Shown here one piece after another: positions 1,729-25,313 of a DNA stretch of 63,712 nt (positions are counted from its first letter, which is position 1; each line of letters opens with the position of its first letter). The stretch spans positions 627,500 to 691,211 of the forward strand of contig RHPI01003369.1 of assembly GCA_009103225.1 (NCBI GenBank), read 5' to 3'. This DNA comes from Chlorokybus atmophyticus. Lineage: Eukaryota; Plantae; Mesostigma and Chlorokybus algae. Both the position numbers and the translations under genes were made by a program. The notes below the pieces were generated by a model. The model did not search any database. It was not told where the DNA came from and saw only the letters and a program-made list of their open reading frames with translations.

Positions 1729-2393
1729 TGGCTTGTGAATATAGTGGCTATTACTAATTATGTACCTCAAGACGAGAGGGTATATTGTTTGTGCGCGCCT
1801 AGTTTGGACTGGTGTACATGGCTTCTGTGCAGGCTGGGTTGCTGCTTATATCGCAGGCCAGTCTCTTGTGGATCTTAGTCAATTTTGATGCGCTATGGTG
1901 ACAGTTTCAGCCAGTCCCTGTACATATTGTAATGACAGATGTTGCTCGTTCTGAGGATAATGTCTGACGCTGATTGTTCCTGTACACGGAAAATAACGTA
2001 ATTTACAACATTTGCCATTTGCATAAAAGCGCCTGAAAGCTGAAGCAAGGTCTGGCCACAAAACTCTCAGGCGCAACCATAGCAATAAACAAAGATATGG
2101 GAAGTGCTGTAGCGTGGTAACATCTAATATCGCTCAAAACAATCTAGAAGCCTAGATGTAAGGCAATGTAAGCAGCTGCATGAAAAGCTGATTGGTGCGG
2201 ATGAGAGTATCACATATCCACTACATCCCAGCGCACTTCAAATCTAGCTGGTCTGACACTTTCTTACATGTCTGCAGGTTGTCCCCTTGGTTGTGGTACT
2301 CCGTAGCTTCTCTTTTGCGACTTGTAAGCTCCCGCAAGTAGAAATAGGCTGTGCATTTGCGAGATTGGTCGTGCTGTTCATGCGTATAACACT

Positions 2394-2997
2394 TGTCATG
2401 CCTATTGCCCAAGCATGCCAGTCGTCATCGGGCATGCCTACAGCAAGACCCTCGCCCGGCTTACCAGCATGGCAACCCGCGCGCGCCTCTGACCAGTAGC
2501 TAGGTCATGTCCCTAGAGTAGCTCGTGACCATAGCCTGCATAGGCACCGCGCGTAGCTGTTCAATAGTGAGTTCAGTTATAAGTCCGGTTCTATATCGAG
2601 TGGGCATTTCCTGTGGAAATAGCCTCGATATGACCGTTAGCTTATGTTCTGGACAGTCATGAGTTGACTTGTATAAGCAGGCACAGTGTTCACCGGATCA
2701 GCTGGTGACACTGTAAGTGAGAAAGCTAAGAGCTTGTGAAGCGACTTGAACTACGAACATACCGTCCTGGTTCCCAAGAATCCCCTCACCGTGTGAAAGC
2801 CTGTGCATGTTCTTGTGCACTGTGCTTGTTCTTGCTGTGAGCTTTGTGTACTTGGTCGCGGTGTGCTTGTTGGCATCAGTCAGGGCATAGCATCCACGTG
2901 TTGCTTGCTCATTCACCTCACTTAACAGTGTAATTTCTCTCCCACTCACGCAAAGAACTGTGTAAACAGCACTACCCATAGTAGTGGCTTGTTGACT
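2394..2997 (+). repeat. Repeat A1 (604 bp), 5' terminal repeat
   Basis: Colinear with 12654-13257 (offset 10260); 8 substitutions counted by eye. Confidence 0.95.
2672..2677 (+). promoter_or_regulatory. Putative TATA box (TATAAG) of the Gypsy element; predicted TSS near 2704
   Basis: TATAAG lies about 32 bp upstream of the segment complementary to the PBS. It is conserved in A2 (12932-12937). Confidence 0.5.
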
Positions 2998-3009
2998 TAC
3001 AGTGTCACC
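2998..3009 (+). promoter_or_regulatory. Self-priming primer-binding site (non-tRNA)
   Basis: 2995-3009 ACTTACAGTGTCACC is the exact reverse complement of 2704-2718 GGTGACACTGTAAGT. No TGG-type tRNA PBS follows A1. Confidence 0.75.
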
Positions 3010-3208
3010 CTCTTTGCTCAAGTGAGTGTAGTTGCAAGCTGTACATCAGCATCGCAAGCTGTAGTTGTACACATCGCAGTGCAGTGTTGTCACCGTCATC
3101 GCATAGCGCGCACAAGCGCTAGTGTGTTGGGTGATAGCAGCACTGGAGATCCCATTGTAGAACACAAACACTCTACCCTTCATCCACTTTCACCATCGCA
3201 CCAGCTGT

Positions 3209-6200
3209 ATGAGCAGGCCCACCCCGTTCTCCCCAATAGACGAGGGTGACCTCAGCAGTTGGAGCCCAACCACCAACCTCACCTACGAGCGGACCAGTGA
3301 CGGGAGCATCGACCGCAGCAGCAGAGGCTCGCGCTCCATCTCCGGCTTCACCCCGCTCCACTCTACTCCTCGTCATCAAGCTTCTCCACTATCCTCGGAC
3401 AGCGACGACAACGAGATGGAGTCTTCCAGTTCAACCACATCCCTGCGCCTCTCCGGACGTGCCGGCACCACCTCGCTGGATGAGTTCATCATCAAGTTCC
3501 ACTCCAAGATGCGGCAGCAAGCTCTGAAGAACAAAGACTGGTCAGATGAGATCTCTTTCCACATTGCTGCTCAGTATCTTGATTATGAAGCACACGATGT
3601 CTGGAAGTCCGTTGCTGAACTGCATCGAGTGGACGGCTATGGCGAGCTTGCCAGCACCATAGAATCTGCATCACTGCACCGTCCAACAGGTGTCGTTCCA
3701 CCTGCCACTTCAGTTGCAGTAACAGGCTTGTCCATAGCTGCAGCTCCCAAGCAGGCAGAGGAGGAGGAACCGGAGTTGGTACTTGTAAACTTGACCCCTG
3801 CAGAAGTTGAGTCCAAGGAGGCCACATGTCGAGTTCGCATCCTTGACCGTTCTGCCGTCATCATTGAGGAACAAAGAGCTGCACAGCAAGCGGCAGCCGC
3901 AGAGTGGGGTACTCCTCTACCTCCGGCAACACCTGGCTCTCGTGCAGGAGGCAGTACCTTCACCCTCGGGTCAGTAGCACTGCGCGCACCAGCCATCTCC
4001 GTAGGTGCTGCCATCTCTGATTTGCCACTCAAGGACCTGTACGCTGCCCTGCGCCGCACCTTCCCTCCTCAGACCACCAGCAAGGTTGAGGAGCTGAGAC
4101 GCTTCCGACGCAAGCCCAATGAGGATCCCCTCCGCTTGTACTCCAGACTGGAAGGTCTGCTGAAGGACACTGACTACAGGATTGTCAGTAAGGAGGCTGC
4201 TGCAGTGATATACGTCAATGAGTTGGATGCGGCTCTAAGCGAGTCGACACGCCTGACTCTGAACTACAGCAGGCCCCTTGGCTACACCCTTAAGGAAGCT
4301 TTCGAGACTGCACAAGCCATCCATAAGCGCGCAGTGTATGAGAAAGCGGTGCTGGACACCAACCGCAGTGCCTCACGGCCTATGGCAGGCACAAGTGCAG
4401 AGCCTTTTCGGCGGGACCGCAGCCGGGCGTCGCAAGGCATCTATTACAAGGATGAACGGTCAGCTCATGCTGCCCTTGTGGCTCCAGTGCTGTGCCACCG
4501 GTGTGGTCGACATGGCCACTACCAGAAGGAGTGCACCGAAGATTACGGCAACCTTGTGTGCGACCACTGCCACAAGACGGGACACTTGGAGACAGTATGC
4601 TGGCTCAAGTTCCCTGAGCTGCGGCCCCCTGTTGGCTACAACAACAGCAACAACGCTGTTGGCTACCGCGGCCACAACAACCACAACAACAACAGGGGCT
4701 ACAACAACAGCAACCACGCTGTCGGCCACAACAACAGCAACAACGCTGGTGGTCGCAACAACGGCAACAACGCTGGTGGCCACAACCCCAACAACAACAA
4801 CAACGCTGGCGGCCGCAAGGAAGAAGCTGGCTATAGAGGGAAAAACCGCCCTCCACAGCACAAAGGACTTGAGGGACGTCCTCGCGCTGGAGCTGCTGCT
4901 GTAAAGGCACCAACCAATCCATCGGCTATCGTCCAAGTGGCAGCCCTGATGGCGCCCGTGGCACAGCTGGAGGAAAACAAGGAGCAGGACTATCAAGCCT
5001 GCTATGCTGCTAGGTGGGCATTGATGGCACCGAAACGGGATAGGGACACTCCCACGCCGTCACGCGTACAACCATCCAGACGGGCGCGCAGGGAAGCTGG
5101 CGCGTCGTCAACAGCGGCATCGTCGGACGCCACAAGCGGTGCTGCCTCGGCAGCCACAACCACCGCTGGGACGACGCCGTCGACGACACCGTCGGCGTCC
5201 ACACCGACCACGACAGCAGGTGTCAGCACTCTTGGCACCACGCTGTTCCCGGTGATGGAGAGCACCCACGCCGCAGCAACCATGGTCGTTGGGTTCGTAA
5301 GTGGTGAATCCACCACTCCTGCCTCCATCGGAACGACCACATCAACCGCAACTGCTGCCACCCTCACAGCCGCCACCTCAGTGACGACGACTGCGGCAGG
5401 TGCCACCACCATCGCCTCCAGTAGTGCTGCCATACCCACCGCACCACTTCCTGAGGGCCGGACGGCACCGCCACCAGCATTGGACGTCACACAGCAAGTG
5501 CCACGCGGGCCGCAAGCAGAAAGCGCCTGGGCGTCGATTCTACGCAACGTGGAGCCCACCACTATTGCGTACGGACCAGGGGGGCAACGCACCACGCACG
5601 TGGCACGCGATGATCGCATTTTGCCCCTACCACCGCCAGAATACCACACGCTGCCGGAACCCACACAACAGCAGCTGGAGGATGAAATCCTCGCCGGCAC
5701 TGCACCAGAGATGAGGGATCGTCTGTTCGGGGTCACCTATCGCCAACCTGCGGTGTTGGAACTGGCCATCCAGTTGTTCCTGGCATTACACACACGGTTG
5801 CAGGGCGCACCCAGTCAATCGCGACAGCCCATGCCCGCTCAACAGATCGACTTCGAGCCTTCGCCACTGGACCCACTCAGCCTCCAGCGACACAAACTCC
5901 AAGACCTCGTGGTCACGATGTCTGACATCGCGCTGGGCGCTGATGCCGCTCTCCGGGGGCTCACTCCAGGCAGTCGTCAAGAGAGTTTCTCTGCACTCGA
6001 ACAGGCCCATCGGTATCGCATGGACCAAGCTGCCCAAGTGGACGCGCGCCGACAAGCGTACGAAGCTGCACACGCCGTTATCGTACCAACCATAGCGCCA
6101 GCACACGTTGCCAGCGCCTCCACGGCGCCGACCACAGCACACTCCACAACGATCGCCATCGAGCAGCCGGGACACGCAACTGTTGCAGACCAAGCGAGGG

Positions 6201-8167
6201 CGTTGGCGCAACAATTGAGGGGAGTAATCGCCCCGCTGCTGCCTCCTTTGGTCGAAGACATGCCTGAGGATCAACGCGATGCAGGGCGAGGGTACCTCAC
6301 CCCGCAAGGGGACACCACACAACGAGGAGGAGCTGGTATGGTGGGGGAGCAACAACTCCGTACCGCACTCATCCGGCAAGCAGTCATGTTGCACAGGCCT
6401 GAGGGCAACACATTAAGACAGATGATGGGGATGCAAGACGGCAGCGCCGCGCGAGCTCGTCTCGTGACATGGCTCGTTGCCAATCACCCTGCTGTCCCCC
6501 TGTTTGCCTTTGGCAACCGAGCATCATGGTTGGGGGCATTCGTTCGTTCGCTGCGACAAGCATACGACGAGGCTGCCACCACAGCCCCGGACACGCTGGA
6601 GGGAGTGCAAGAGGCAATGCTTCGGCTGCCAGGGGTGGAAGCCGCACGGCAACGGCGGCGCATCGCCATTGCTCATGAGCTACACGCACAGCAGACTGAC
6701 CTCCAGCGCACCCTACGTGCTCGCGCCATGACTGTGCTCGATGTGGGAGTGGTACAGGGAAGGTGGGATGCCTACATGGCAGGGATCCTACGAGTCCCCA
6801 CCATTACTCACGACATGCGGCGACAGCTACTACGCGCCGTATACCTGCAGCCCATGCCTCAATATCATCATTGGACCGACACGGACACCGAGCCCACGGC
6901 CACGTGGGAAGGGACATTGGTCAGAGAAGCGGCTCATGCTGTGCGATGGACGTACGCCGCGGAGCAAGCTGAACGCGAGGCAGGCCCACAAACACCGGGT
7001 CCGCCGGGGTTCCCTCCACAGCCACTGGGTACGCCCGTGGGCATGATTCCAGCTTCTCAGAGGCGTCATCCACCTGCGCCGCCACCACAACCGGCGCCGG
7101 AACCTCCAGCACCGAGGCCCCCCCGTGTCTACCAACCACCTCGACAAGGTCGGTTCGGCAGAGGGAGAGGGCAAGGAGGGGGTTCTCCGGATCCAGCAGG
7201 CAGAGGAGCTCTGGCTGCCATGCGCTCGGCATCTCCAGCTGAGGCAACTGAGTCAGAGGAACAAACACCTCGTATGAAGAGGTTGCGTATCGACGCCAAC
7301 GCTGCCATGGTGGCCAACCAAGGCAAGCACGTTACCATCAACGGTCTGGCACCCAAGCGGGTAATGTTGGACACCGGAGCACAGCCTGTCATCATCGGGC
7401 GCTTCCTCGCGCGGTCCCTAGGCATAACCAGTTCCGACTTGGTGCCTTGCCCGTGCGTGTTGGACACTGCCACAGGTAGCCGGGATAAGGTGATGGGAGT
7501 CACCAGGGAGGCCTTTTGCATTCGGTTGATAGGGCTGGACCCAACCCACACGACCGAGATCGTCCAGCAATACATGGTCACCAATGCCGGCTCCTTCGAC
7601 TTTCTGCTTGGGCAGGATTTCAACTTCCCTGTGGGCATGGGCCTCGACTGCTGCACAGAACGAGCGTGGTTTCGGCCACATTGGGATGAGGATGACGGAG
7701 AGGTACAGGGTTTCCTGCCTCTCGAGTTGGTCTCGCGCACGCGCGCCCAACGCAAAATGGCTGCCATGGCCACACGCAGACACGCCCGCACCCGTAAGGC
7801 TGTAATGGACATATACGACGGTGCTCAGACGCAAGTCGCTGCTGGTGCCACAACCCCGTGTCAAACCGGCGACCCTCCTCCCATCTCGTACAACAAGGAG
7901 CAGGAGGATGCCACCGTGGAAGTAGCATTACAAGACCCAGCTGAACGGCGCTGGCGCGCACAGGTGGACGCACACATCTTGCTCAGCCACCCACTGATCA
8001 CCACGCGCTTCCCCAACTACCGAAGCCACGTCAAGGTGCAGGACCACATATGGTGGCCACCGGAGTGGTGGAATTCCACACCTTTCGCAGACAACAGGGC
8101 ATCACAGTGTTGGAGCTGTTTGGAGGCATTGGCAGTGGTCTTGCTGCGGTCCTCAACACGGGCGTGA
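3209..8167 (+). CDS. gag: Gag-protease polyprotein (1652 aa)
   Basis: Capsid-like segment (LRRTFPPQTTSKVEELRRFRRKPNEDP). Two zinc knuckles, CHRCGRHGHYQKEC and CDHCHKTGHLETVC (4493-4600). Aspartic protease RVMLDTGAQ...FDFLLGQDF (about 7330-7640). Confidence 0.88.
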   Translation: MSRPTPFSPIDEGDLSSWSPTTNLTYERTSDGSIDRSSRGSRSISGFTPLHSTPRHQASPLSSDSDDNEMESSSSTTSLRLSGRAGTTSLDEFIIKFHSKMRQQALKNKDWSDEISFHIAAQYLDYEAHDVWKSVAELHRVDGYGELASTIESASLHRPTGVVPPATSVAVTGLSIAAAPKQAEEEEPELVLVNLTPAEVESKEATCRVRILDRSAVIIEEQRAAQQAAAAEWGTPLPPATPGSRAGGSTFTLGSVALRAPAISVGAAISDLPLKDLYAALRRTFPPQTTSKVEELRRFRRKPNEDPLRLYSRLEGLLKDTDYRIVSKEAAAVIYVNELDAALSESTRLTLNYSRPLGYTLKEAFETAQAIHKRAVYEKAVLDTNRSASRPMAGTSAEPFRRDRSRASQGIYYKDERSAHAALVAPVLCHRCGRHGHYQKECTEDYGNLVCDHCHKTGHLETVCWLKFPELRPPVGYNNSNNAVGYRGHNNHNNNRGYNNSNHAVGHNNSNNAGGRNNGNNAGGHNPNNNNNAGGRKEEAGYRGKNRPPQHKGLEGRPRAGAAAVKAPTNPSAIVQVAALMAPVAQLEENKEQDYQACYAARWALMAPKRDRDTPTPSRVQPSRRARREAGASSTAASSDATSGAASAATTTAGTTPSTTPSASTPTTTAGVSTLGTTLFPVMESTHAAATMVVGFVSGESTTPASIGTTTSTATAATLTAATSVTTTAAGATTIASSSAAIPTAPLPEGRTAPPPALDVTQQVPRGPQAESAWASILRNVEPTTIAYGPGGQRTTHVARDDRILPLPPPEYHTLPEPTQQQLEDEILAGTAPEMRDRLFGVTYRQPAVLELAIQLFLALHTRLQGAPSQSRQPMPAQQIDFEPSPLDPLSLQRHKLQDLVVTMSDIALGADAALRGLTPGSRQESFSALEQAHRYRMDQAAQVDARRQAYEAAHAVIVPTIAPAHVASASTAPTTAHSTTIAIEQPGHATVADQARALAQQLRGVIAPLLPPLVEDMPEDQRDAGRGYLTPQGDTTQRGGAGMVGEQQLRTALIRQAVMLHRPEGNTLRQMMGMQDGSAARARLVTWLVANHPAVPLFAFGNRASWLGAFVRSLRQAYDEAATTAPDTLEGVQEAMLRLPGVEAARQRRRIAIAHELHAQQTDLQRTLRARAMTVLDVGVVQGRWDAYMAGILRVPTITHDMRRQLLRAVYLQPMPQYHHWTDTDTEPTATWEGTLVREAAHAVRWTYAAEQAEREAGPQTPGPPGFPPQPLGTPVGMIPASQRRHPPAPPPQPAPEPPAPRPPRVYQPPRQGRFGRGRGQGGGSPDPAGRGALAAMRSASPAEATESEEQTPRMKRLRIDANAAMVANQGKHVTINGLAPKRVMLDTGAQPVIIGRFLARSLGITSSDLVPCPCVLDTATGSRDKVMGVTREAFCIRLIGLDPTHTTEIVQQYMVTNAGSFDFLLGQDFNFPVGMGLDCCTERAWFRPHWDEDDGEVQGFLPLELVSRTRAQRKMAAMATRRHARTRKAVMDIYDGAQTQVAAGATTPCQTGDPPPISYNKEQEDATVEVALQDPAERRWRAQVDAHILLSHPLITTRFPNYRSHVKVQDHIWWPPEWWNSTPFADNRASQCWSCLEALAVVLLRSSTRA
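4635..4812 (+). repeat. Imperfect coding tandem repeat (GGCyAC-AAC-AAC... units; Gly/Asn-rich) in gag
   Basis: Repeated G[YH]NNSNxA[VG] units directly after the zinc knuckles. Confidence 0.8.
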
Positions 8168-11100
8168 AGGTTACCAAATACTGTTACTGCGACCCAGACC
8201 CACACGCGCAAACGGTCCTCAAGCACCACTTACGCCAACTGCACACCAGGTATCCACGTCAACTACCCCTCTCGGCGTTGCAAGGCAGCCTCAAAGCATT
8301 GCCACAGGACGTCCGGCTGATCACTGAAGATCACCTACTGTCCCTCGGCAACATCGACCTGTTAATAGCTGGATGGGAATGCCAAGGGCACTCCAGGGCA
8401 GGCAAGGGACAAGGCCTCAAAAACCCTCGCTCCAGGTTGTTCTGGGAGCTGATGAGGATCATCCACCTCCTTCAACACCACCAGATCTCCAGACCCCTGG
8501 GGTACGTCATCGAAAATGTGCATAGAGAGGACGACAAGCGTCCGCACGTGGCCTCCAGCTACCGACAAGTTTGCTCCATTCTGGGGCACCCACTCAAGGT
8601 GAACGCGGCACGACATGGCTCGCGCGCACATCGTGTACGTGCCAAATGGACAAACTTGGCCACCGTGGAGGAGCTCATGACCGCCGAATACACGCGCAGC
8701 GCTCGGCCGCGCAACCTGCTGGTCGACGACATCCTTGACCCCGGCCGCACAGCACAACCTGTCTTGCATCATGACCACAACCACTTCTACCAGTGCAATC
8801 AGCCTGGTCAGCCCCGTCGCGCACTCCCCACATTGGTGTCCTACCCGGGCTCCTACGCATTTCGGAACGGTGGTGACGGGATGGTATTTAATGCAACCAC
8901 CAACACGTTGAAAGAACCCAACGCACGCGAACGTGAACGCGCCATGGGCTTCTTCCCCAACAGCATCACAGGTTCATCGCTGACGGACAATCAGCAATGC
9001 CAGCTGGTTGGTCGCGCCATGGACCAGAACAGCATGGTATGGCTGCTGGAGCTGAGCTTCGCGTTGCAGGACCGCCACGTGTCCTTTGAGGATCTCGAAC
9101 ACTTGGCTGGGGGGTGGGCTGATCGCGTCGACACCAAGGCAGCTCACACAGCTCTCGAGGTGATCCACATGGAGGAGCAAGCGGCAGTGACAGTGGAGGA
9201 CATTCCTGTGGTTGCCAATGCGACCTCCTGGGACCATGCCATTGGCCCGTTGGCCACGGAAGACACTCGAGAGAAGCTGGAGGCTCTCCTCAATAAATGG
9301 AGGAGCCAATTCAGCTTCAATGTGAAGGAATTGGGTACATGTTCGGTGTACCAGATGGACATCGAGCTAGTGGACACTGAGCCGGTGTTCCGGCGACAAT
9401 ACAGGCTCTCCAAGTTGGAAGAAGACTTGGTGGAACAGAGATGTAAGGCGCTGCTGGATGCAGGCCTTTTCGAAGAGTCCACATCGGACTTCGCAGCAGC
9501 AACCGTCATGCCCTTGAAGAAGGATTCAGCAGGCAACTGGACAGAGCGACGCATGTGTGGCGACTATCGTCCCCTCAATAACAAGACCAAGCAAGACCGG
9601 TACCCCATGCCCACAGCAGAGGGTATTTTTGATGATGTGGGAGACTGCACAGTCTTCAGCATCCTGGACATGCGTCAGGGGTACAACCAGATCGCCATCA
9701 AGGACGAGGACAAGCACAAGACCTCCTTCTGGGGCAACCGACAGTTGTACCAATGGAAGGTAATGCCGTTCGGGCTGAAGAATGCCCCCGCCAAGTTTCA
9801 ACGCGTCATGGACAAAGCCTTGAAGGGGCTGGACTGCGCGCGGTGCTACATCGATGACATCCTCATCTTCAGCCGCAGCAACGAGGAGCATCTTCAGCAC
9901 ATCGAAGCGGTGCTGGAACGACTCAAGGGAGTGGGGATGACCGTACACCCCGACAAGTGTACCTTCTTCACCCACAAGGTGCCGTACTTAGGGCACATGA
10001 TTGTGCCCCATGGTGTGTATGTGCAGCAGGCAAAAGTAGAGGCTCTGGCAGCTATCCCTGCCCCGACAGACCTCACACGTCTGCGCGCTTTCTTGGGACT
10101 TGCCAACTACTATCGCCGGTTCGTGAAGGACTTCGCGAAGATCGCAAGGCCCCTCAACGAGCTACTGAAGAAGGAGGTGGAGTTCGCGTGGAAGGAGCCG
10201 CAACAGCAGGCCTTCGAGGAGCTGAAGAGCAGACTCACCAGCGCTCCCATCCTTCAACGTCCGGACTACGCCAAGCCTTTCATCCTTCACACCGACTGGA
10301 GCAAGCTGGGGATGGGAGCGGTGCTGGTGCAGCACGATGAGCACAAGAAGGAGCGGGTGGTGGCATACGCCAGCCGAAGCAACAACAGCACTGAGGCCAA
10401 CTACAGCAGCTATGAAGGGGAATGCCTCGCTGCAGTGTGGGCCATCTCCTTCTTCCGACCTTTCCTCTTTGGTCGACAGTTCCAACTGATCACCGATCAT
10501 CAGCCCCTCAAGTGGCTGATGACCAACCAACATCTGACAGGGAAACTTGCTCGATGGGCCCTGCTGTTACAGGAATACGACTTCGAGATTGACCACCGCG
10601 CTGGCCTCACCAACCAAGACGCCGATGGCCTCAGTCGCAACCCCCACCTCAGCACCAACGACGCAACTGGAGCGCGGCATGAGCTCATCCCTGCAGCAAC
10701 AGCTCCCACCATGGCAGCCATGTTTGCTGCTGCCGCGTTGCGCTCAGGGCGCAAGACCAACACCACAACCTCAGCAGTGGTAGAGGAGATTCCTGCCCTT
10801 GAGTCTACTGACCCTGCGGCAATCACACCCTTGGGAGACGCCCACGCAGCCAACATTGACGTCGATGACACAGAGCTGGCGTCCACTGACACCAGGCAGG
10901 ACATATGGCACGACAAGCCATCACTCTCCTTTCTTCAACATGGCCATCTCCCCTCTGGCATGAGCGCTCGAGAGAAGGACCGGGTCAATCAACGCACCCG
11001 TCACTATCGATGGGCAGGTGACAAGCTGTATCGCCGCTTCCACGACGAAGACAAGAAAGTGCCGACACCAGTCACGCGCGAGGACATCATCACTTCCCTC

Positions 11101-12364
11101 CACACTGAGCTTGGACACTTTGATGTCAAGCGCACAGTCAGTCTAGTGAGAGCACAATATTGGTGGTATGGATTAACAAAACAGGTGCAAAGGTTCGTCA
11201 GCCACTGCCAGCAGTGTGACATGGTGCGCGCCAGCCTCAACACGCGCAGCGCCACCTTGCACCCACTCCCCATCTCCGGTCTCTTTTACCGATGGGGACT
11301 CGACATCTTGGGGGACTTGGCACCCTCAGCACGTGGCAACCGTTACATCCTGGTTATGATTGAGCACTTCTCCAAATGGGTGGAGCTGGTGCCATTACCC
11401 GACAAGAGCAGCAGGGGGGTGTCTCAAGCCTTCCTCTCTCACGTTCTCAGCCGCTTTGGCAGCTGCGCCGAGGTCATCACCGACCAAGGTACTGAGTTCT
11501 GAGGGGAATTCGACACCCTCTTGGACAAATGTTACATCGACCACCGCCGTACCCTCGCGTGATCACCCTTAAGCCGACGGCCTCGCCGAGCGGACGGTAC
11601 AGACCATCAAGAAGGCACTCCGCAAATACGTGTTGGAGTACAAGAAGGACACTTGGGATGACCACCTCCCATGGGTGGCCCTTGGATATCGGTTGTCAAA
11701 ACAGGCGGCTCTGCGGGAGTACAGCCCGTACTACTTGCTGTTTGGGCGACCACCATTGCTCCCCTTCCGTGCGCAACAGGAGGTGGATAGCGTCGTGAAC
11801 AACCTCGACGACCCTGACTGGATGCACCACGACATCACCACGCGCGCCGCACTTTTCGAGCGCACCGTCCCCATGGCCTTCAACAATCAACGCATCGCGC
11901 AGCATCGCAACACGCTGCGCTACGAGCGCGTACGCAGCGGCTTTTACAAGGAGCGCCAACGGCGATTCCAAGCGGGGGACTTTGCCTATCGCATGGCAGC
12001 CACCAAAGACACGCTTGACACCTCCGTAGGCCGCACCGTCTACAAGGTACTCAAAGTGTACCCCACAGGGGTGCTGGACCTCCTTGGTCAAAACGGAGAA
12101 AGGTTGAAGGACAACATGGTGAACTGTGCGCCATGTCACCTCCCTTACGTAGCTGGCTTCGGGCGTATCCAGCACCCTCGTCCTGCGCGCAGCACCCGCT
12201 GTGAACACTGCGGCAGCGCCGGCGACGACGCACTTATGATGCTCTGCGATGGCTGCAACAAAGGCCTGCATTGCTACTGCCTGGAGCCACCTTTGAACAC
12301 GATACCTATGGAAGAATATTGGTGCGACGACTGCCGTACCAACGGCCCTCCTCACTTGCGCTAG
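8050..12364 (+). pseudogene. pol: Pol: DNMT3-like C5-methyltransferase, RT, RNase H, integrase, PHD; integrase core disrupted
   Basis: DNMT motifs LELFGGIG, DLLIAGWECQ, YVIENV, HRVRAKWTN, LVGRAM. RT motifs RMCGDYRPLN and YIDD. RNase H ILHTDWS...EGECLA. Integrase HTELGH/CQQC, WGLD, TDQGTEF. TGA at 11500-11502, an extra base near 11552, and TAA at 11570-11572 break the core. PHD at 12200-12334. Confidence 0.92.
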
Positions 12365-12401
12365 CAGCTGAGCTCTGGAGCTGGAACCTTCCCCAGAGCC
12401 C

Positions 12402-12409
12402 AGGGGGGG
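12402..12409 (+). promoter_or_regulatory. Polypurine tract-like AGGGGGGG
   Basis: Purine run just after the pol stop and directly before repeat B1. Confidence 0.6.
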
Positions 12410-12651
12410 TGGCTTGTTGACTCTGTATGCTACGGCACAGCATGTTCTTAGGGAAAACACCGACTCCATCTGCCCGTACTACCCAGCAGCAGCACCCCAG
12501 CTGCACGAAGCACTTGTCACCATGAGGGGGGAGGTCATCTTTCTGTTCTTGCTACGCGTCACCCAGGTGGCGCAGCAGCATGTCCAGCACAATATGGCTG
12601 TCCATGCAGCTGTCCGAGACAGCGTGACCCTCGACTCCCCTCGACCCGACA
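12409..12651 (+). repeat. Repeat B1 (243 bp)
   Basis: Colinear with 13244-13486 (offset 835); 6 substitutions; ends CCCGACA. Confidence 0.95.
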
Positions 12652-12653
12652 GC

Positions 12654-13257
12654 TGTCATGCCTATCGCCCAAGCATGCCAGTCGTCATCGGGCATGCCTA
12701 CAGCGAGACCCTCGCCCGGCTTACCAGCATGGCAACCCGCGCGCGCCTCTGACCAGTAGCTAGGTCATGTCCCTAGAGTAGCTCGTGACCATAGCCTGCA
12801 TAGGCACCGCGCGTAGCTGTTCAGTTGTGAGTTCAGTTATAAGTCCGGTTCTATATCGAGTGGGCATTTCCTGTGGAAATAGCCTCGATATGACCGTTAG
12901 CTTATGTTCTGGACAGTCATGAGTTGACTTGTATAAGTAGGCACAGTGTTCACCGGATCAGCTGGTGACACTGTAAGTGAGAAAGCTAAGAGCTTGTGAA
13001 GCGACTTGAACTACGAACACACCGTCCTGGTTCCCAAGAATCCCCTCACCGTGTGAGAGCCTGTGCATGTTCTTGTGCACTGTGCTTGTTCTTGCTGTGA
13101 GCTTTGTGTACTTGGTCGCGGTGTGCTTGTTGGCATCAGTCAGGGCATAGCATCCACGTGCTGCTTGCTCATTCACCTCACTTAACAGTGTAATTTCTCT
13201 CCCACTCACGCAAAGAACTGTGTAAACAGCACTACCCATAGTAGTGGCTTGTTGACT
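12654..13257 (+). repeat. Repeat A2 (604 bp)
   Basis: Copy of 2394-2997; begins TGTCATG two bases (GC) after B1. Confidence 0.95.
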
Positions 13258-13486
13258 CTGTATGCTACGGCACAGCATGTTCTTAGGGAAAACACCAACT
13301 CCATCTGCCCGTACTACCCAGCAGCAGCACCCCAGCTGCACGAAGCACTTGTCACCATCAGGGTGGAGGTCATCTTTTTGTTCTTGCTACGCGTCACCCA
13401 GGTGGCGCAGCAGCATGTCCAGCACAGTCTGGCTGTCCATGCAGCTGTCCGAGACAGCGTGACCCTCGACTCCCCTCGACCCGACA
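13244..13486 (+). repeat. Repeat B2 (243 bp), 3' terminal repeat
   Basis: Copy of B1; overlaps the A2 end by the 14-mer GTGGCTTGTTGACT; followed by TSD CACT. Confidence 0.95.
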
Positions 13487-14187
13487 CACTGGAGGCTGTG
13501 CATGAGGGTGTGGTATTTACATCGTATGTCATGTGCAAGATACTTGAGGATGTGCATGTGCAAGATAAAAGAACCCTAGCATGTGGCATTGACAGTGCAT
13601 CGTAACCCACCTTGGTTATGCCAGTCTTGTTTGGTCCCTTCAATCATGTCGCCGTGGTCGCAGCTGCTGGTGGGTCGAATGCTCTTGGAGGTAGTATTAT
13701 GGTGTGCCTTTTCCCACTCGGAGGGGAGCCCTCATAAGATATCGCTCAAGCCACTGTTGTCATTGGCTGTGCCTTTGGTAGGCATGGTGGGGTTTGACAC
13801 CAAGGACACCCCGCTGGCACCTTGCCCGCCCTATGCGAGCATGGGGCTTCATCCCGGACCTCGACCACAATGCCCACTACGCCCTTGGCAGCGCCGCCAA
13901 CGATCCACCAAACGCCACATACCCTCGGCATCACCGCCCTGTAAGGGCATAGCTTGGCGGAGCCATCAATAGTGTTTTCATGCGCAAGGACTGGCATTGC
14001 CAGCACTTGTCAATGTTACGAATTGCCATTGCCACTGTATAAAGGTACCATTGAAATGATACCTTTGTACAAAGGCATCTTCGAACTATTGAAACGGTAC
14101 AATCAAAATCTATGCAAACTCACCCCACCCTGGACATGCAATGGCTCGATCGTATTATAATAATAGTACGACGGAGCCGTCACGCCA

Positions 14188-17100
14188 GTGAATGGCGGCC
14201 AAGTTTCCTGCCTCTGGCATGCAAGGGTAGCGGCGGCGGCGTTGCGTGTTGATGGATATGATGATGCAGTTTACATTTGCGACACTTGTGTCGATGTTGG
14301 TAGTGAGATGGGAGTCCTTTATCCGTATTGCCACATGCGCTTTGCCACACGCAGCTCGGTCTACATGCACATTGTTAGCAGCAGGGTGTGCAAGCAAATC
14401 AAGCTGTATGTCGGCCAGCGTCCAGTACAGTATGATGCGGGTCATGTTGAACCGGGGAGTTCACTCCAGGATGCGCACATGCTTGATGCTGAAGCACCCA
14501 TTCAGGAGACACACGCACAGCAGCAACAGGAGGAGGAGGAAGTGAACGAGGGCTTTTAATGTGTGCGTTTGCCTAAGAAACCTATGGCACGCCAGCATGA
14601 AAGTGGAGGCGTCCCTTCGCATGTGTCGGAATATAGGTGGTATGGCTCGGAGCATGCTCTTGCAGTGACATTTGTGCAGTGCAACAATGGTGAAGGCCTG
14701 TCGGCCTCCAATATGGGGTGGATCATCAAGTGCATCCGAAATGCACACTTCCTGACGGAAGAGCTCTAGTGGGAGACCGGTGTGCATGTGGCCAGCTACC
14801 TCCGGACCAAAATTGCTTTCTCTTGGTCTGAGGAGTGTTCACGGTGTGCGGTGCATGTGTTCAACCATCAGAGCCATGTCACATATGCACATGCGAGTGT
14901 GCTGCCGTATCAGAACTACGTGACGGCTGACCTGCGCAAGCCTGCAGATCCTGAGGATCAGGACATCAGCGTCACATATATGGCGGCCAAGGTTTGTGAA
15001 ATGCGGTATTTAATTAATTTGAGGCCAGCATGGCTGTTAATGCTCTTGGTCGGAGCAGGTATGGCTCGCGCGGCTATATGGCAATCCACATGCCATTAAT
15101 GGCTTCAATCTCCAGTACAGTGGTAACGAGCACAGCTTTGGCCAACCTTCCACGTGCAATTGGTGGAAGGATGTTGAGGTGGATTTGAGGAGAGAGGTGG
15201 GGGAAGCGTCCTACTTGGCGCCTGCCATTCTGTACAATGACATGACCACGCTGGACAGCGCGGGCAAGCACTCTGGCTACCCTCCAATGACATCACTTGC
15301 CAACTACAGTTGAGACATGTATGCTAGCAACATGGGGGTTGATATGATAGCGCTTCTGCCGGTGGTTCACGCAGTGGCCAAGCATCCCACCTGGGCACAG
15401 GGCACGGAATCGTTCCCAATTTAAAAGCGTGAGATTTTTGATGACGCTTCAAATGTGGTGTTAGAGGATGTGAAGCGGGCGAGCTGGGAAGGTCTGCAGC
15501 TCATCGACCCGAATGGCATCGAGCGTTGTGTATTTCCCGCACTTGCCAACTACATCAGCGACTTGTAGGTAGTGGGCATGCATGGTTGTAACTAGATGCA
15601 GCCTGCCGGCAAACAGCTTATTGAGGATGTTGGCAGCGAAGCATCTGAGTTTGTCGTGTTGCAGGAAATTGCCACACTCGCACACACTGTGTCGGGCAAC
15701 CAAACACGACATCCTTGCGATGTTTGCCTCGTCACCAAATCAGATCTGTTGGAGATGGATGAGCACGCGGAATTGAGAACCGAGGCTTTCTACACACCAG
15801 CAATGCAACAGCTGCGGGCGGACTTGCATAGCGGTGTTGGGAATGCATGCCAGACAAACGAGGCTTTTAAAGAGCAGCACTTCATGCATGTCGAGGAGGT
15901 AATGGTTAAGTTACCGGCATTCTGCTGCCAAACCAAGCAATGTCGTTTGGCAGCAGAATGCACTGTGGGGGTGGCAACAATAGCGGGTGCCGGGAGCTGC
16001 TACTCTCGCCTTGCCCCTGACACAATGCATGTGCTGGGAAGCATCATTGACCACCTGCTTGCTGCTGTGTATGACACTGCGAAGGAACGCATGCGTGTAT
16101 CCATGAGACGGATTCTGCAGGCCAGGCACGTCTTTAGTGTTGCTTTTGTGTTGAATAAAAAGGCCAACGACACGTGCTCACAAGCAGACGTGCACAGGCT
16201 GAATGCATACAAGGCGATTCTACGGGTCTCGCACTTCAAGGCACCCACAAGCACAGTAGATTCCTTCATGTCCTGCCACTCTTTTGTAATGGTGGGGAAA
16301 ATGGCGGTGCTGCAGCTGCTGCCGGTCCTTGCAGACGGTTTGCTGCTCGACAGTGAGGGCAACGATTCGTTCACCATTCATGCCGCATCGCTTGTTCAGT
16401 GGAACAAGAAGTTGCTCAAGGCGCATGAACACACAAGATCCCTGACTACAGCCGACAATAAGCTGGCTGCCTTTAAATCTGCTGTGCTGCAGCCGCTACT
16501 GTCGCCATATTCTGCACAGAAGTCAGGTTGGAAGATCGAGAAGATACATCAGCTCACTCTTTGTGGGCCGGCAATTGTCAGCAATGGACACCCAGATTGG
16601 TTCAGCGCCAACCGCATGGAGCAGACGCACGCCAAAAATATCAAATAGTGGGCGCGTGGTGGCAACAACAGGGACTACCAGGTGCGTATCCTGAAGGCAT
16701 GGAGCTGTGCGGAATATGTGAGAGAGGATGGCATGGTCGTGGATCCCGAGATGCGCTCGGTCATGGCGCAGGCGCGACAGCAGTGCTGTAATGTAATGGA
16801 GAAGACGGACAAGTTGCTGACAAGGAGGAAGTCCAGCCCGTACTGGAGCGGATCTGCGCGTAGCCAAGTCGCCCTAAAGACTCCATTCGCCAACAAGCTG
16901 CCTGCCACCCTGGACAGCTGGTTGAGGAAGGAACAACTGGAGTTGGCCGACGGGTGGCGTGCTGTTTGCGTGGTGAACGGAGGCGTAGCGGTGTACATGA
17001 CATCAGGAGTCAGCATGGCGCGCGCAACTGGGATGTTTCATGGGCGGCCTTGGTTCTCTACACTTGAGCTAGAAGGTGATGAGCGCGGTGTGAACGTGAC

Positions 17101-20251: not shown

Positions 20252-20653
20252 TGTTGAAGATATTCCTACATTCGGTCAGCCTGCCCTGCATACAAGAGAG
20301 AAGAGAAGGGACCTCGATGGGAGGACCTCGAAGACTCCGGACATGAAGGTCCTGGCGCGGACTGCAGAGAAGTGTCCTAGGAGAATCGTCATATCTCCTA
20401 GGATACTCAGTCTTATAGGACATGGCATAGCTTGTTGGAAAGCTTATCAAGTTAGCTACGTGGCACATCTTACAGCGTAGGATTCGGTTCAGTAGATCGG
20501 ACGCTGTTGCATGTAGACCAGCAGTGTGTACAAACTGTGTACTGACTGGCGGGTATATGACCCCGCGGTTTGTTGGTAATAAATCGGGAAGTGTGTTGCC
20601 TTCTCCTGTGTGTCATTGCTTGCCCTCTTCACTTGCATGCTTGCTTCTCAACA
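20252..20653 (+). repeat. Copia 5' LTR
   Basis: TG...CA; direct repeat of 24912-25313. Confidence 0.97.
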
Positions 20654-20976
20654 GGTTATGGGCCCACACTACGCGTGAAGAGTGTAAGAAAGAGAAAGAA
20701 AGCGAAGTGAAGAAAAGTGACAAAGTGCATTGAAGTGAAGATCGAAGTCACTCAAGACTGAAGAGTGAAGAGAAGACCGAAGTCACTCAAGACTGAAGGC
20801 GCTGAAGAGTGAAGTGAAGACCGAAGTCATTCAAGACCGAAGTCATTGAAGTCACTGAAGAGTGAAGTGTAGGTTAAAGTTACTGAAGTCAACAAAGTCA
20901 CTCAAGTCACAACACGTGAAGATTATCAAAGCAAGTCTCAAGTGCTAACTGCAAGAAGAAAGCAGGCGCGGCAAAG

Positions 20977-23900
20977 ATGGAGGTAAGCTACGATAAAGGG
21001 CTGATCACAAAGCTGGACACAAACAACCACAGCACTTGGTGCGTAGAGATGAAGGCACTACTTATCCACAAGAAGATGTGGAAGTATGTTGACCCGAAGG
21101 CATCTGCACCAAGAGCAGGAGAAGAAAGCATCTGGCTTGAACACTCAGTTGAAGCACATTCCTTGATGGTGTTTAACTGCAAGCCACATCACTTTCCCAC
21201 GCTCATAGCATGTGAAGATGGCAGACAAGCTTGGGAGAAGCTTGCAGCCGTATTTCAAGCCAAGAACAACGCCAGAAAGTTACAATTACGCAAGCAGCTA
21301 AGCGCGCTTCATAAAGAGACGTCCGAGCCGGTCACAAAGTATGTTGCACGTGCGAGAGAGCTGTGGACGGACCTCATCAACGTCGGCCACAAGATGGAAG
21401 AGACGGAGGTCGTATTGGCAATTGTTGCAGGACTGCCATTAGAATACGAAGTTGTCGCTACTCTGCTCGAGACATCGTCATCGGAGCTAACCCTAGACGA
21501 TGTGCTACCCAAGTTGCTCACTGTGGAGCAACGCGTCTCAAAGAAGGAAGAGCAAGCGGACTCTGTGGCCTTCTACACACGAGACAANAAGACAAATACA
21601 AAAAATTAAGCAACTATGAAGACAAGAACAAGGCGAAAGGCAGCAACTCAAAGTTCAAGAATCTCACATGCCACTATTGTGGTATTAAACGACATATCTC
21701 AAAGGATTGTCGTAAGCGCCAACGAGAGCAATCTGAAGCAGGTACCAGTAGCAACGCTCAACGCAAAGAAAAGGGTGTTGCGTTTACTGCCTTAAGAAAG
21801 TTTGATACAACTTCATGGGCAATTGACTCAGGCTGTGACCAGCATCTCACACCGCACAAGGAGGTGATGGAGAACTACAGGAAGATGTCAACCACAAGGA
21901 AGGTGGAAGGCTTTAATGGTCACGAGTTGGAAGCAATAGGAGTTGGTGAAGTGAGGCTTCAATGCAAGTTTGGTGATGGTGAGAGAGAGGTGGTACTGCG
22001 TGAAGTATTGCACGTACCTGGAGCTGCTGCAAGCTTGTTTTTTGTGAGAGTTGCTGAGTGCGTGGGAGCTGAGATAGTGATCCGGGAGGGACGCTGCTCC
22101 GTACGCATGGATGGGGTCAAGTACATGGTCGGCACCCAACGAGGAGGGCTCTACATTGTGGAGCAGACTCATGGCAGCAAGGCTATGATCGTGAAGGAGA
22201 AGGAGACGGCTGAGCTTTGGCATCGAAGGTTCGGGCATTTGGGCTATAGCAACCTCACACGCCTGGTCGCTGAAGACATGGTGAAGGGCATTACTGGGAG
22301 CAAGGAAGATTTTCAAGCGTCTTCAACTACGCTCTGTGAACCCTGTGTGTTGGCCAAGCAGCATCGCATGCCGTTCTCATCATCTTCTTCAAGTAGCAAA
22401 CATCCCTGCGAGCTTGTGCACATGGACGTTTGCGGGCCTATGCGCATTGTGGCGAAAGGAGGGGTAAGGTACTTTGCAACATTCCTCGACGACTACAGCA
22501 AGCTTTCCATCGTCTTCCCTTTGATTCAAAAGTCAGAAGTCGCTGGAGCTGTGCGTACAGTCATTGCATTGCTTGAGATTCAATCGGGCAAGAAGATGAA
22601 AGCAATGAGAAGTGATCGAGGAGGGGAGTACATCAACGCCCAGCTCAAAGAGTTCTTCGCCAGCAAAGGCATACGGCATGAGACAACAGCACCATACACT
22701 CCGCAGCAGAATGGAGCAGCTGAACGTCTCAACCGAACGTTGTTGGAGCGTGTTCGAGCCATGCTCAATGACACCAAGTTGGAGGACAGTCTGTGGAAAG
22801 AGGCCGTTCTCACTGCCAACTACATCCGCAACCGTTCACCGATAAGCTCTGAGCAAAAGACTCCGTGGGAGCTCTTTTACGGTGAAGCGCCAGATGTGAG
22901 TGGCATGCGTGTGTTCGGATGTGTGGCATATGCACTTGTGCCAAGTCAATTGCGACACAAGTTGGAGCCGGTCAGCAAGAAGGGCATCTTCGTTGGCTAC
23001 GAACCAGGCTCAAAGGCGTACAAGGTCCTACTGGAGGACACGCGCAAGATTGTGGTGAGCAGAGAAGTCGTGTTCCACGAAGGCTCATCACAAGTTGAAG
23101 CTGAAGAAGGTTTCTACCCTCAAGATGAAGATGACAAAGCACAACCTGAAGAGCTTTCAAGCAGAGAAGAGGTTGAAGGCGAGGCATCAGTCATCAATAA
23201 AGAGCAGGGCTCATCTGTAGCAGATGAGAAGCAGAAGCAGCAGGAGCAAGCTCGACGCTACCCAGTAAGGGAAAGACAAGCACCTGACTTCTACAAGGCA
23301 CACATCGCTAGTGTGCACAATCACGAGAGTGAAGAACCAAGCACCTGCGAGGAGGCATTGCGAGCACCAGATGCAGAACAATGGCAGCGAGCTATGGATG
23401 ATGAGATTGCATCACTCCATGCCAACAACACATGGGTGTGGGAGAAGCCCCCGCAAGGTGTGAAGCCCATTCCGGTCAAGTGGGTGTTCAAGGTGAAGCG
23501 TGATGGTCAAGGCAACATCGAGCGCTACAAGGCAAGGTTGGTGGCAAAGGGATTTTTGCAACAAGAAGGTGTGGATTTCAATGAAGTGTTTGCACCTGCA
23601 AGTAAGCATGCAACCTTCCGCACATTGATCGCCATGGTTGCTGCTGAAGACCTCGAGTGTCACCACCTTGATGTGAAGACTGCTTTCCTTTACGGAGAGC
23701 TGGAGGAAGAGATCTACACCAAGCAACCACCAGGCTACGCAGAAGGGGAGCCAGGCATGGCTTGCAAGTTGATCAAGGCTTTGTATGGGCTGCGACAAGC
23801 ACCACGTGTGTGGCACATTCGCCTCACGAAAGAGTTGGAGAAACTCGGCTACAAAGCATCCTCAGCGGATCCGGGGCTCTTCATCCATGAAGAGAAGAAG

Positions 23901-24866: not shown

Positions 24867-24911
24867 GTGAAAGAAGACCAAGCGTTGGAGGCCAAGCTGC
24901 CCGCGTGGGAG

Positions 24912-25313
24912 TGTTGAAGATATTCCTACATCCGGTCAGCCTGCCCTGCATACAAGAGAGAAGAGAAGGGACCTCGATGGGAGGACCTCGAAGACTCCGG
25001 ACATGAAGGTCCTGGCGCGGACTGCAGAGAAGGGTCCTAGGAGAATCGTCATATCTCCTAGGATACTCAGTCTTATAGGACGTGGCATAGCTTGTTGGAA
25101 AGCTTATCAAGTTAGCTACGTGGCACATCTTACAGCGTAGGATTCGGTTCAGTAGATCGGACGCTGTTGCATGTAGACCAGCAGTGTGTACAAACTGTGT
25201 ACTGACTGGCGGGTATATAACCCCGCGGTTTGTTGGTAATAAATCGGGAAGTGTGTTGCCTTCTCCTGTGTGTCATTGCTTGCCCTCTTCACTTGCATGC
25301 TTGCTTCTCAACA
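24912..25313 (+). repeat. Copia 3' LTR
   Basis: Direct repeat of 20252-20653. Confidence 0.97.

Follow-up and report, generated by a model that had tools for sequence, protein, structure and literature searches.

The window, a 63.7-kb stretch of Chlorokybus atmophyticus DNA, contains an old, by now defective copy of a probably self-priming Ty3/Gypsy element, a member of the streptophyte Gypsy-DNMT3/PHD clade. Repeat searching, BLAST and alignment gave the order of its repeats as A1-internal-B1-GC-A2-B2. The Pol domain order PR-RT-RNaseH-IN, a DDE integrase (broken in this copy), TG..CA ends and a short target-site duplication (TSD) are all as found in Ty3/Gypsy elements (Metaviridae). However, the two complete flanking LTRs of that family are lacking; the 5' end consists of A only, and the unit running from polypurine tract (PPT) to primer-binding site (PBS) is permuted relative to the integrated ends. 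The features of the element are listed in Table 1.

Table 1. Features of the Chlorokybus element, in window coordinates
Feature	Position	Strand	Remarks
5' target-site duplication, CACT	2390-2393	+	Identical to 13487-13490
A1	2394-2997	+	Promoter-bearing 3' part of U3, followed by R and U5; opens with TGTCATGCC
Putative TATA box, TATAAG	2672-2677	+	About 30 nt 5' of the probable transcription start; read from sequence
Probable genomic-RNA 5' end and self-primer, GGTGACACTGTAAGT	2704-2718	+	Perfect 15-nt reverse complement of 2995-3009
Putative self-primer PBS, TACAGTGTCACC	2998-3009	+	Adjoins the A1 3' end; pairing extends 3 nt into A (2995-2997)
ORF1, 1652 aa	3209-8167	+	Gag and aspartic protease; Pfam, ORF list, tandem-repeat search
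Pol	8050-11598	+	-1 frame relative to ORF1; C5 cytosine DNA methyltransferase, RT, RNase H, integrase H2C2 zinc finger, rve core; Pfam, tblastn with P0002/P0003/P0004, translation
Remaining integrase core and C-terminal PHD finger	11465-12364	+	Other frame; tblastn, translation, Pfam PHD match
Polypurine tract, AGGGGGGG	12402-12409	+	Adjoins B1; read from sequence
B1	12410-12651	+	5' part of U3; terminates in CCCGACA
Palindrome GACA-GC-TGTC, GACAGCTGTC, 10 bp	12648-12657	.	B1/A2 junction; candidate integrase recognition/cleavage (att) site
A2	12654-13257	+	604 bp, matches A1
B2	13245-13486	+	A2/B2 joint is the U5 end joined to the U3 start
3' target-site duplication, CACT	13487-13490	+	Equals the 5' copy

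The two A copies differ at 8 of 604 bp (98.7% identity) and the two B copies at 6 of 242 bp (97.5% identity). A first-pass annotation of this DNA had placed A correctly, at 2394 and 12654, and had taken B to be 243 bp long, starting at 12409 and 13244; the extra G is a chance match of both flanks. Its view that the element was inserted as one piece agrees with the outer termini, TGTC from 2394 and GACA to 13486, with the CACT TSD on either side. The 13-mer TGGCTTGTTGACT both closes A and opens B, and A2 and B2 consequently overlap at 13245-13257; the same 13-mer is also found after the G-run, at the start of B1. BLAST detected no further copies of A, B or the internal region within the 63.7-kb window, and the source genome is represented here by this single, defective copy. 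A Copia element elsewhere in the window has a normal LTR pair.

ORF1 encodes a Gag, whose CCHC knuckle (aa 429-444) is weak, and an aspartic protease (Pfam Asp_protease_2, aa 1375-1471); its long middle part, to which no domain is assigned, carries 27-nt repeats of the CAACAG type. Pfam matches in ORF2 comprised RVT_1, RT_RNaseH/RT_RNaseH_2, Integrase_H2C2 and rve, together with a DNA methyltransferase (DNMT) domain (PF00145, aa 86-159). The Pol reading frame halts at an in-frame TAG at 11500-11502, and homology extends to ∼11598. The integrase is broken by a frameshift near 11555-11598 and by a second in-frame TAG near 11570. In a tree of RT-RNaseH sequences the window element falls among Gypsy elements. 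No Pfam match to a tyrosine recombinase (Phage_integrase) was obtained in the three sense-strand ORFs or, on either strand, in the 11 longest of the remaining ORFs; the domain is also missing from the precomputed Pfam lists of the relatives described below, in which rve is present. The Gypsy-type assignment of the first-pass annotation, with its Gypsy RT and DDE integrase, thus stands: the element has the domains PR-RT-RNaseH-H2C2/rve and, in the scanned ORFs, no tyrosine recombinase. The DNMT, the PHD finger, the probable self-priming and the breakage of the integrase had all been overlooked.

The putative signals for replication lie at the inner edges of the repeats. The 15-nt complementarity between the putative self-primer and the A1 end was reached in none of 2000 shuffled sequences, in which the longest match was 12 nt, and in the predicted RNA fold 2704-2718 pairs with 2995-3009 in both the minimum free energy and the centroid structures. 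A perfect self-primer complement of about 10-16 nt, at most 3 nt from the A1 end, is present in 11 elements: that of the window (W) and L004, L005, L010, L032, L035, L079, L081, L088, L089, and L090. Six different self-primer sequences occur among these 11 elements, and the pairing therefore covaries. The predicted folds bring the probable RNA 5' end together with the PBS, and relatives keep this arrangement although their sequences differ. These features suggest that the genomic RNA begins at the self-primer, at position ∼2704. No tRNA genes were found in the window. A tRNA-type PBS at TGGCTTGTTGACT was considered and rejected; this sequence begins with TGG but is a poor fit to a tRNA 3' end, and priming is better explained by the self-primer. 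At the other side of the internal region, a G-run lies immediately 5' of B1 in nearly all relatives. With a G-run or PPT before B1 and a self-primer site at the end of A1, the replicative LTR is B-GC-A, as had been proposed at first pass from the PPT-to-PBS span; the G-run abuts B1 and the 15-nt complement straddles the A1 end.

Because the dinucleotide GC (12652-12653) lies between B1 and A2, the junction forms the 10-bp palindrome GACAGCTGTC, which is unique in the 63.7-kb window. Relatives keep CGACA-GC-TGTCA; the spacer is GC, or GT/AC (one transition off), and is AA in one copy. In the collapsed contigs L001, L002, L006, and L007 the palindrome occurs exactly once, downstream of pol. The conservation of this motif points to the palindrome as the probable recognition and cleavage site of the integrase.

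Related loci were gathered using an alignment of seven Pol sequences. The order A1-internal-B1-NN-A2-B2 was also found in Closterium (two species), Marchantia, Calypogeia, and about 20 moss-associated metagenome contigs, in elements with Pol about 40-60% identical to that of the window element. The first 450 aa of the window Pol are 45-52% identical to DNMT proteins of Calypogeia, Closterium, and many metagenome DNMTs, and the DDE integrase is conserved throughout the clade. A perfect 4-bp TSD was seen around the window copy and in 12 or more relatives. These include Closterium sp. NIES-65 (L004, split layout, ACTC), Marchantia polymorpha (L088, split layout, CCCT), Calypogeia fissa (L089, with three A-B units, AGGT), and the moss-associated contigs L005 (GGTC), L027 (TGAC), L032 (ATGT), L035 (TTTA), L079 (CCAT), and L016 (CCAC). 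Imperfect TSDs were seen in L010, L075, and L081, which match at three of four bases, and in L051, which matches at two of four. The metagenome contigs L001, L002, and L003 are uninformative on layout because they were assembled as collapsed circles or tandems. L086 and L087, the closest outgroup in the sample, carry normal LTR pairs with TG..CA ends, a PBS of the tRNA type, and 4-bp TSDs; they are sister to the 33-row split-repeat clade with SH-aLRT values of 99 and 100.

A census of repeat arrangements at the sampled loci was made with reference A and B sequences. It counted about 23 independent copies of the form A-int-BAB or int-BAB, about 10 of the form A-int-B or int-B, and one solo A-B (L084, TSD CAAT). 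No A-B-A-int copy was found among the ∼21 loci having upstream sequence, and the census gave no AB-int-AB copy in the clade. The screen of relatives and the RT tree that the first-pass annotation had called for thus bear out a Gypsy element whose layout is a family trait, recurring with its own TSDs in each host group. The A-int-B and solo A-B forms that it predicted exist, with TSDs; the A-B-A-int-B insertions that it thought possible are those missing at the ∼21 loci. Unequal recombination after insertion can make A-int-B, solo A-B, and the Calypogeia triple unit alike, and these forms consequently do not discriminate between the routes considered below.

The joint between A2 and B2 differs among close copies that share A ends and B starts. 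It is blunt in about 12 copies, carries one additional nucleotide in four (C in L011, T in L056 and L065, A in L077), and is an overlap of 2 nt in L027 and L079, 1 nt in L088, and 13 nt in the window copy. Deletions of ∼15 nt and ∼150 nt are found at the joint in L078 and L016, respectively. Single-base differences could in part be later mutations. The variability fits a process in which cDNA ends are joined anew for each insertion and integrase then cuts at the internal palindrome, and the heterogeneous joint matches the fresh joining of cDNA ends in the circle proposed at first pass. The 13-nt A/B overlap was rejected as a feature of the clade since it is missing in all relatives.

We propose a model of replication and palindrome-cut integration that, taken as a whole, is probably correct. 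The transcript would begin inside A1 near 2704, and the first ∼12 nt of the RNA would fold back to the site after A1 and prime the minus strand, in the manner of Tf1. The plus strand would be primed at the G-run before B1. Reverse transcription on this scheme duplicates B-GC-A, and the primary cDNA would therefore be BA-internal-BA. The DDE integrase would bypass the cDNA tips and act in the middle of the repeat, on ...GACA-GC-TGTC..., where nicking of the palindrome substrate (CGACAGCTGTCA) 3' of each CA would leave a 2-nt GC overhang resembling a processed retroviral end. The native cDNA tips, the end of A and the start of B, would be joined together. Cutting of the left-repeat palindrome would then give A-internal-B-GC-A-B, inserted with a 4-bp stagger. 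Both the tip joining and the integrase cleavage are deduced from integrated copies. The layout may persist because no shorter integrated form would give a transcript, running from A1 to a putative poly(A) site in A2, that keeps one full B-GC-A; B2 would be a by-product.

The census bears directly on how the palindrome is chosen. The first-pass annotation had proposed that linear BA-int-BA is ligated to a free two-LTR circle, which is then opened at either of two identical B/A palindromes. Such a symmetric circle accounts for the A-int-B-A-B order, the conserved palindrome, and the heterogeneous A/B joint, and circle junctions are cleavable by retroviral integrases. However, it expects A-B-A-int-B equally often, and finding none among ∼21 loci against ∼23 A-int-BAB copies has a chance of ∼1e-7 under a 1:1 ratio. 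The process thus appears to be polar, which a simple, symmetric circle does not account for; we consider such a circle unlikely. Our preferred model, palindrome cutting after tip joining, itself needs an additional polar assumption to meet the 0:23 ratio. Speculatively, the earliest double-stranded palindrome, formed by plus-strand strong-stop DNA on the minus strand, would end up in the left repeat, and integrase may commit to this left palindrome before the right copy exists. How far the palindrome lies from the cDNA tip was rejected as the cause of polarity, as A and B of L079 are nearly equal in length (316 and 314 bp).

Polarity would be inherent if the joint arose by a template jump of the reverse transcriptase. 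In this scheme the plus-strand 3' end (the A end) would jump to the minus-strand copy of the B start and copy B as far as the integrase nick at the palindrome, giving linear A-int-B-A-B-GC with no ligated circle. The 13-nt redundancy of the window copy, in which the A end equals the B start, is what such a jump would use; the additional nucleotides and the 1-2-nt overlaps at other A/B joints resemble its products, and its run-off end, CA+GC, is like an unprocessed retroviral end. Most relatives are nevertheless without overlap, and the large joint deletions in L016 and L078 look more like end joining. We accordingly hold this scheme, too, to be improbable. The 13-nt overlap of the window copy has no explanation in the preferred model of palindrome cutting after tip joining, and counts against it. 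Hepadnaviruses and caulimoviruses have circular DNA that is permuted relative to the RNA, with no integrase and no need to integrate, and in hepadnaviruses a short terminal redundancy of the minus strand (r) guides the circularizing jump. The 13-nt A/B overlap could play the part of r, an analogy drawn from one copy.

A DIRS/PAT/Ngaro-like element whose tyrosine recombinase is lost or supplied in trans would also have the order A1-int-B1-A2-B2, which is the hallmark of the PAT/Ngaro type (PMC8969392). The PAT, Ngaro, and TOC1 elements share with the window clade the further property that the internal B1/A2 junction copies the joint of the element ends. These elements have a tyrosine recombinase, no DDE integrase, and no TSD, whereas the window clade has TG..CA ends, 4-bp TSDs, and an RT that groups with Gypsy, and retains the DDE integrase clade-wide; DIRS elements make no TSD (PMC8969392). 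With a tyrosine recombinase found neither in the tested ORFs nor in the Pfam lists of the relatives, this origin is very unlikely. That an ordinary AB-int-AB Gypsy element was rearranged in one instance or misassembled, as the single copy in the window might suggest, is already refuted by the same layout, palindrome, and TSD rule in independent Closterium, Marchantia, and Calypogeia assemblies and many metagenome contigs, by a clade in which no AB-int-AB copy was seen, by the positions of the PBS next to A1 and the PPT next to B1, and by the assembly of the Copia element in the same window with normal LTRs.

The first-pass annotation had known of no such arrangement in Gypsy elements. However, a DIRS-like repeat arrangement with Gypsy domains appears in Fig. 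4c of a study of KnitGypsy-Dnmt3 from Klebsormidium nitens (de Mendoza et al. 2018, Nat Commun 9:1341, PMC5890265). KnitGypsy-Dnmt3 and the window element both combine a Gypsy Pol carrying a Dnmt3-like C5 methyltransferase with DIRS-like repeats and belong to one kind of element. That paper (PMC5890265) does not extend to junction sequences, TSDs, an analysis of PBS and PPT, a mechanism, or a distribution beyond K. nitens, and our literature search found no published account of mechanism or distribution for the split-repeat Gypsy layout. No Klebsormidium-named protein was among the best matches to the window proteins, the best of which were 45-54% identical. An EamA-like exon had a single, weak match.

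Tf1/Sushi elements are known to self-prime, and plant Tcn1 is predicted to do so (PMC6317226). Similarly, in the window clade the first 11-16 nt of the probable RNA are complementary to a site immediately after U5, and a tRNA-type PBS is absent. Tf1/Sushi and Tcn1 differ in having a chromodomain and a full pair of LTRs; the window clade has split repeats and a PHD finger, and usually a DNMT. Retroviral integrases (PFV, HIV-1) cleave palindromic LTR-LTR junctions (PMC1905944, PMC1180852, PMC4372172). There, nicking of a CA..TG palindrome gives integration-competent ends, and the window clade may do the same. In retroviruses the palindrome comes from ligated cDNA tips, has a 4-nt spacer, and represents a side route. 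In the window clade, by contrast, the palindrome is encoded within the repeat and has a 2-nt spacer, the A/B joint would correspond to the ligated tips, and the route appears obligatory.

We put at about even the proposition that this clade moved its integrase site from the cDNA tips to a palindrome within the LTR, with prior tip joining, by ligation or template jump, being obligatory and of one fixed polarity. If true, this would be a natural, obligatory form of circle-junction integration, and split direct repeats would have evolved independently of tyrosine recombinases.

In the textbook view, an LTR retrotransposon enters the genome through the tips of its linear cDNA, and split direct repeats are taken as the signature of a tyrosine recombinase; integration by way of a circle junction was long since discarded for retroviruses. 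The clade described here departs from the rules on both tip integration and split repeats. It combines a DDE integrase and TSDs with integrated ends that fall midway along the reverse-transcription repeat; what are probably the cDNA tips are fused inside the element, at a joint that varies from copy to copy. If the proposed route is right, these elements, which are often multicopy in Marchantia, Calypogeia, Closterium, and moss-associated contigs, would offer a natural system for the action of integrase at internal palindromes and for the fate of joined-end cDNA. The route would also call for caution in annotation, as LTR finders will miss or misclassify such elements, and as a convergent parallel it may help to explain the PAT/Ngaro layout. 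The findings are relevant, too, to the biology of the retrotransposons with DNMT and PHD domains that were reported in 2018.

The Gypsy element has its repeats in the order A1-internal-B1-GC-A2-B2, and the positions assigned to A and B in the first-pass annotation were borne out (see the table). The element ends in TGTC...GACA and has CACT on either flank. The GC spacer between B1 and A2 forms part of a palindrome, GACAGCTGTC, which occurs once in the window. The final 13 nt of A (TGGCTTGTTGACT) are identical to the initial 13 nt of B, so that A2 and B2 overlap; this detail is new. A Ty1/Copia element in the same window has an ordinary direct pair of LTRs, 99% identical, and so provides an internal control that ordinary LTR pairs were assembled correctly there. 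The window also contains two microsatellites, two single N bases, and three host gene fragments for which no close named homologues were found.

Positions of features in the window and, where indicated, in loci of relatives
Feature	Position	Description
A1	2394-2997	604 bp; 8 differences from A2
A2	12654-13257	604 bp; 8 differences from A1
B1	12410-12651	242 bp; 6 differences from B2
B2	13245-13486	242 bp; 6 differences from B1
Self-primer pairing	2995-3009 with 2704-2718	15 nt
ORF1	3209-8167	1652 aa; weak CCHC knuckle, aspartic protease
Tandem repeats in ORF1	4629-4804	27 nt, CAACAG type
ORF2	8050-11502	-1 frame; C5 DNA methyltransferase segment, RT, RNase H, H2C2 zinc finger, beginning of rve core
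Methyltransferase	8050-9399	Dnmt3-like
Third frame	to 12364	remaining integrase, PHD finger
In-frame TAG	11500-11502	
Frameshift	~11555-11598	
PHD finger	11630-12364	
Copia element	20252-25211	
Copia LTRs	20252-20551, 24912-25211	
Copia pol ORF	21363-24866	RVT_2, rve, gag_pre-integrs
Single N bases	21588, 31639	
(AC)n	31578-32161	584 bp
(AG)n	55729-55931	203 bp
Host gene fragment	29101-29832	EamA-like transporter exon
Host gene fragment	44922-45650	beta-mannosidase Ig-fold domains
Host gene fragment	51506-54127	873-aa GC-rich ORF with IQ motif
L001 matching ends	36-149, 10785-10898	
L079 B repeats	12728-13041, 13357-13661	
L089 element	6855-16429	CBCUJL010000032.1

The Dnmt3-like methyltransferase lies at the N terminus of Pol, and the PHD finger at the C terminus of the integrase occupies the place of the chromodomain in chromoviruses. 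Both domains were missing from the first-pass annotation, and both are common to relatives in Closterium, Marchantia, and Calypogeia. ORF1 is unusually long, with tandem repeats inside a stretch of ~900 residues without an assigned domain between the zinc knuckle and the protease. Scans of the sense ORFs and of the 11 longest remaining ORFs detected no tyrosine recombinase domain. Comparison with intact relatives showed that the integrase core is broken by an in-frame TAG and by a frameshift followed by a second TAG (~11570) in the new frame. These lesions make the window copy a dead one, and its repeat divergence of 1.3-2.5% agrees with this. Both premature stops stand at positions where relatives carry Q; these stops and several of the differences between repeat copies are transitions, a pattern compatible with deamination of methylated cytosine.

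Pol homologues with the same methyltransferase/RT/integrase/PHD architecture were found in Closterium, Marchantia, Calypogeia, and many metagenomes, and the repeats at their loci were inspected. Four loci have the order A1-internal-B1-NN-A2-B2 with ends TGTCA...CGACA, each within its own perfect 4-bp target-site duplication (TSD): Closterium sp. NIES-65 (L004, ACTC), a 55-kb contig where the element adjoins a PPR-DYW gene (L005, GGTC), Marchantia polymorpha chromosome 6 (L088, CCCT), and Calypogeia fissa (L089, AGGT). A degraded copy in a second Closterium species (L090) has the same B-palindrome-A-B tail. This recurrence in Closterium, Marchantia, Calypogeia, and metagenome contigs shows that the layout is neither a one-off rearrangement nor a misassembly. 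The Calypogeia element has A and B three times each (A-int-B-GC-A-B-GC-A-B) within its one TSD, and may have arisen by unequal exchange or from an intermediate that carried one more repeat unit.

Scanning JGI metagenome contigs yielded 80 loci, mostly from moss-associated samples, which were surveyed by self-BLAST and with reference A and B sequences, duplicate contigs being removed. This census gave ~19 A-int-BAB or int-BAB copies, ~10 A-int-B or int-B copies (two with perfect TSDs, ATAT and AATT), and one solo A-B (TSD CAAT). At the census locus L016, B2 is reduced to its final 29 nt within a perfect TSD (CCAC). The census contained no AB-int-AB copies, and A-B-A-int-B was absent from the ~21 loci with upstream sequence. 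Two metagenome contigs from GC-rich relatives are self-closing, with periods of ~10.7 kb (L001) and ~15.4-15.8 kb (L002); assembler collapse of repeats is the most likely cause, and we disfavor them as evidence of circular DNA. In an RT-RNase H tree the split-repeat elements form one clade (SH-aLRT 99). Their sisters, in the sense of nearest in this sample, are L086 and L087, probably from animal genomes and conventional in structure: their TG..CA LTRs are complete, the TSDs are 4 bp long, and the primer-binding site is of the tRNA type.

In the window copy and in almost every relative, B1 is immediately preceded by a G-run. No tRNA-type site follows A1 directly. In its place is a stretch of 10-16 nt, beginning no more than 3 nt from the A1 end, that is perfectly complementary to a segment of A lying 107-290 nt upstream. 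The same pairing is found in L004, L005, L088, L089, L090, and five further loci (L010, L032, L035, L079, L081), and it covaries, since six unrelated sequences are involved. For the window copy, the longest match in 2000 shuffles never exceeded 12 nt, compared with the 15 nt observed. Such complementarity is characteristic of self-priming elements of the Tf1/Sushi type (PMC6317226), with a putative RNA start at the upstream site. TATAAG lies ~30 nt upstream of that putative start, and in the predicted fold of the corresponding leader the first bases pair with the primer-binding site in both minimum free energy and centroid structures. The positions of the G-run and self-primer identify B as the 5' part of U3 and A as the 3' portion of U3 together with R and U5; the end of A is the U5 tip expected with a 12-nt primer. 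The unit copied twice by reverse transcription is thus B-GC-A, upholding the replicative LTR originally proposed. In the L079 subfamily of the moss clade (likewise L080 and L082), B extends ~140 nt farther in the 5' direction and begins after a weak purine run, AATGGTGG, with the usual G-run inside B, which suggests that plus-strand priming has moved to an upstream site.

The two junctions differ in character. B1|A2 is a conserved palindrome, CGACA-GC-TGTCA, whose spacer is GC, GT/AC (one transition off), or AA in one copy (L032); in collapsed contigs there is just one such palindrome downstream of pol. The two palindrome halves resemble TGT...ACA, with which the ordinary sister elements begin and end. 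A2|B2, the U5 tip joined to the U3 tip, is variable. Among moss-clade copies sharing the A end (..CAAT) and B start (ATACATG..), the joint is blunt in ~12. Others have an extra C (L011), T (L056, L065), or A (L077), share 2 nt (L027, L079), or lack ~15 nt (L078) or ~150 nt (L016); 1 nt is shared in Marchantia and 13 nt in the window. This spread is what joints formed anew at each insertion, by end joining or template jump, would look like, and the variable joint is the strongest new support for fusion of the cDNA tips before or during integration.

The best reading of these sequences is a four-step route. Self-primed reverse transcription would yield a BA-int-BA cDNA, and its tips would be joined. 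The DDE integrase would then nick 3' of both CAs in the palindrome of the left repeat, leaving GC overhangs, and insertion of both nicked ends with a 4-bp stagger would give A-int-B-GC-A-B. Cutting of palindromic LTR-LTR junctions is a known activity of retroviral integrases (PMC1905944, PMC1180852, PMC4372172). A-int-B-A-B would be the shortest integrated form whose transcript keeps one entire B-GC-A unit, which would account for its being the propagating form. We speculate that the polarity is kinetic: the first duplex palindrome would be plus-strand strong-stop DNA on the minus strand, which becomes the left repeat, and the right-hand copy would arise only once the entire plus strand is made. 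Another possible route is a template jump: at the end of A the plus strand would switch to the start of B and be extended until it runs off at a nick made by integrase. Such a jump is inherently polar, and the 13-nt overlap in the window is consistent with it. Unequal recombination after insertion can account for A-int-B, solo A-B, and the Calypogeia triple unit alike, and these forms do not discriminate between routes. The circle model of the first-pass annotation accommodates the layout, but its symmetric form, with opening at either palindrome, is not enough, as it would yield A-B-A-int-B and A-int-B-A-B equally often (observed, 0 versus ~23).

The first-pass annotation knew of no description of this layout for Gypsy elements, but one exists: a figure legend on KnitGypsy-Dnmt3 of Klebsormidium nitens reports a DIRS-like repeat arrangement with Gypsy domains (de Mendoza et al. 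2018, PMC5890265), and the window element is a further member of this kind. Our literature search, including that paper, found no account of the junction rules, TSDs, self-priming, variable joint, or polarity, nor of the wider distribution in Zygnematophyceae, liverworts, and moss-associated sequences. The window element differs from DIRS elements in showing no tyrosine recombinase in the ORFs scanned and in having TSDs, and agrees with Ty3/Gypsy on each criterion compared other than the two complete LTRs that define the group. The split-repeat feature is real and was correctly outlined, with an earlier one-line mention that offered no explanation. Its significance comes from the mechanism that it implies rather than from the layout by itself.
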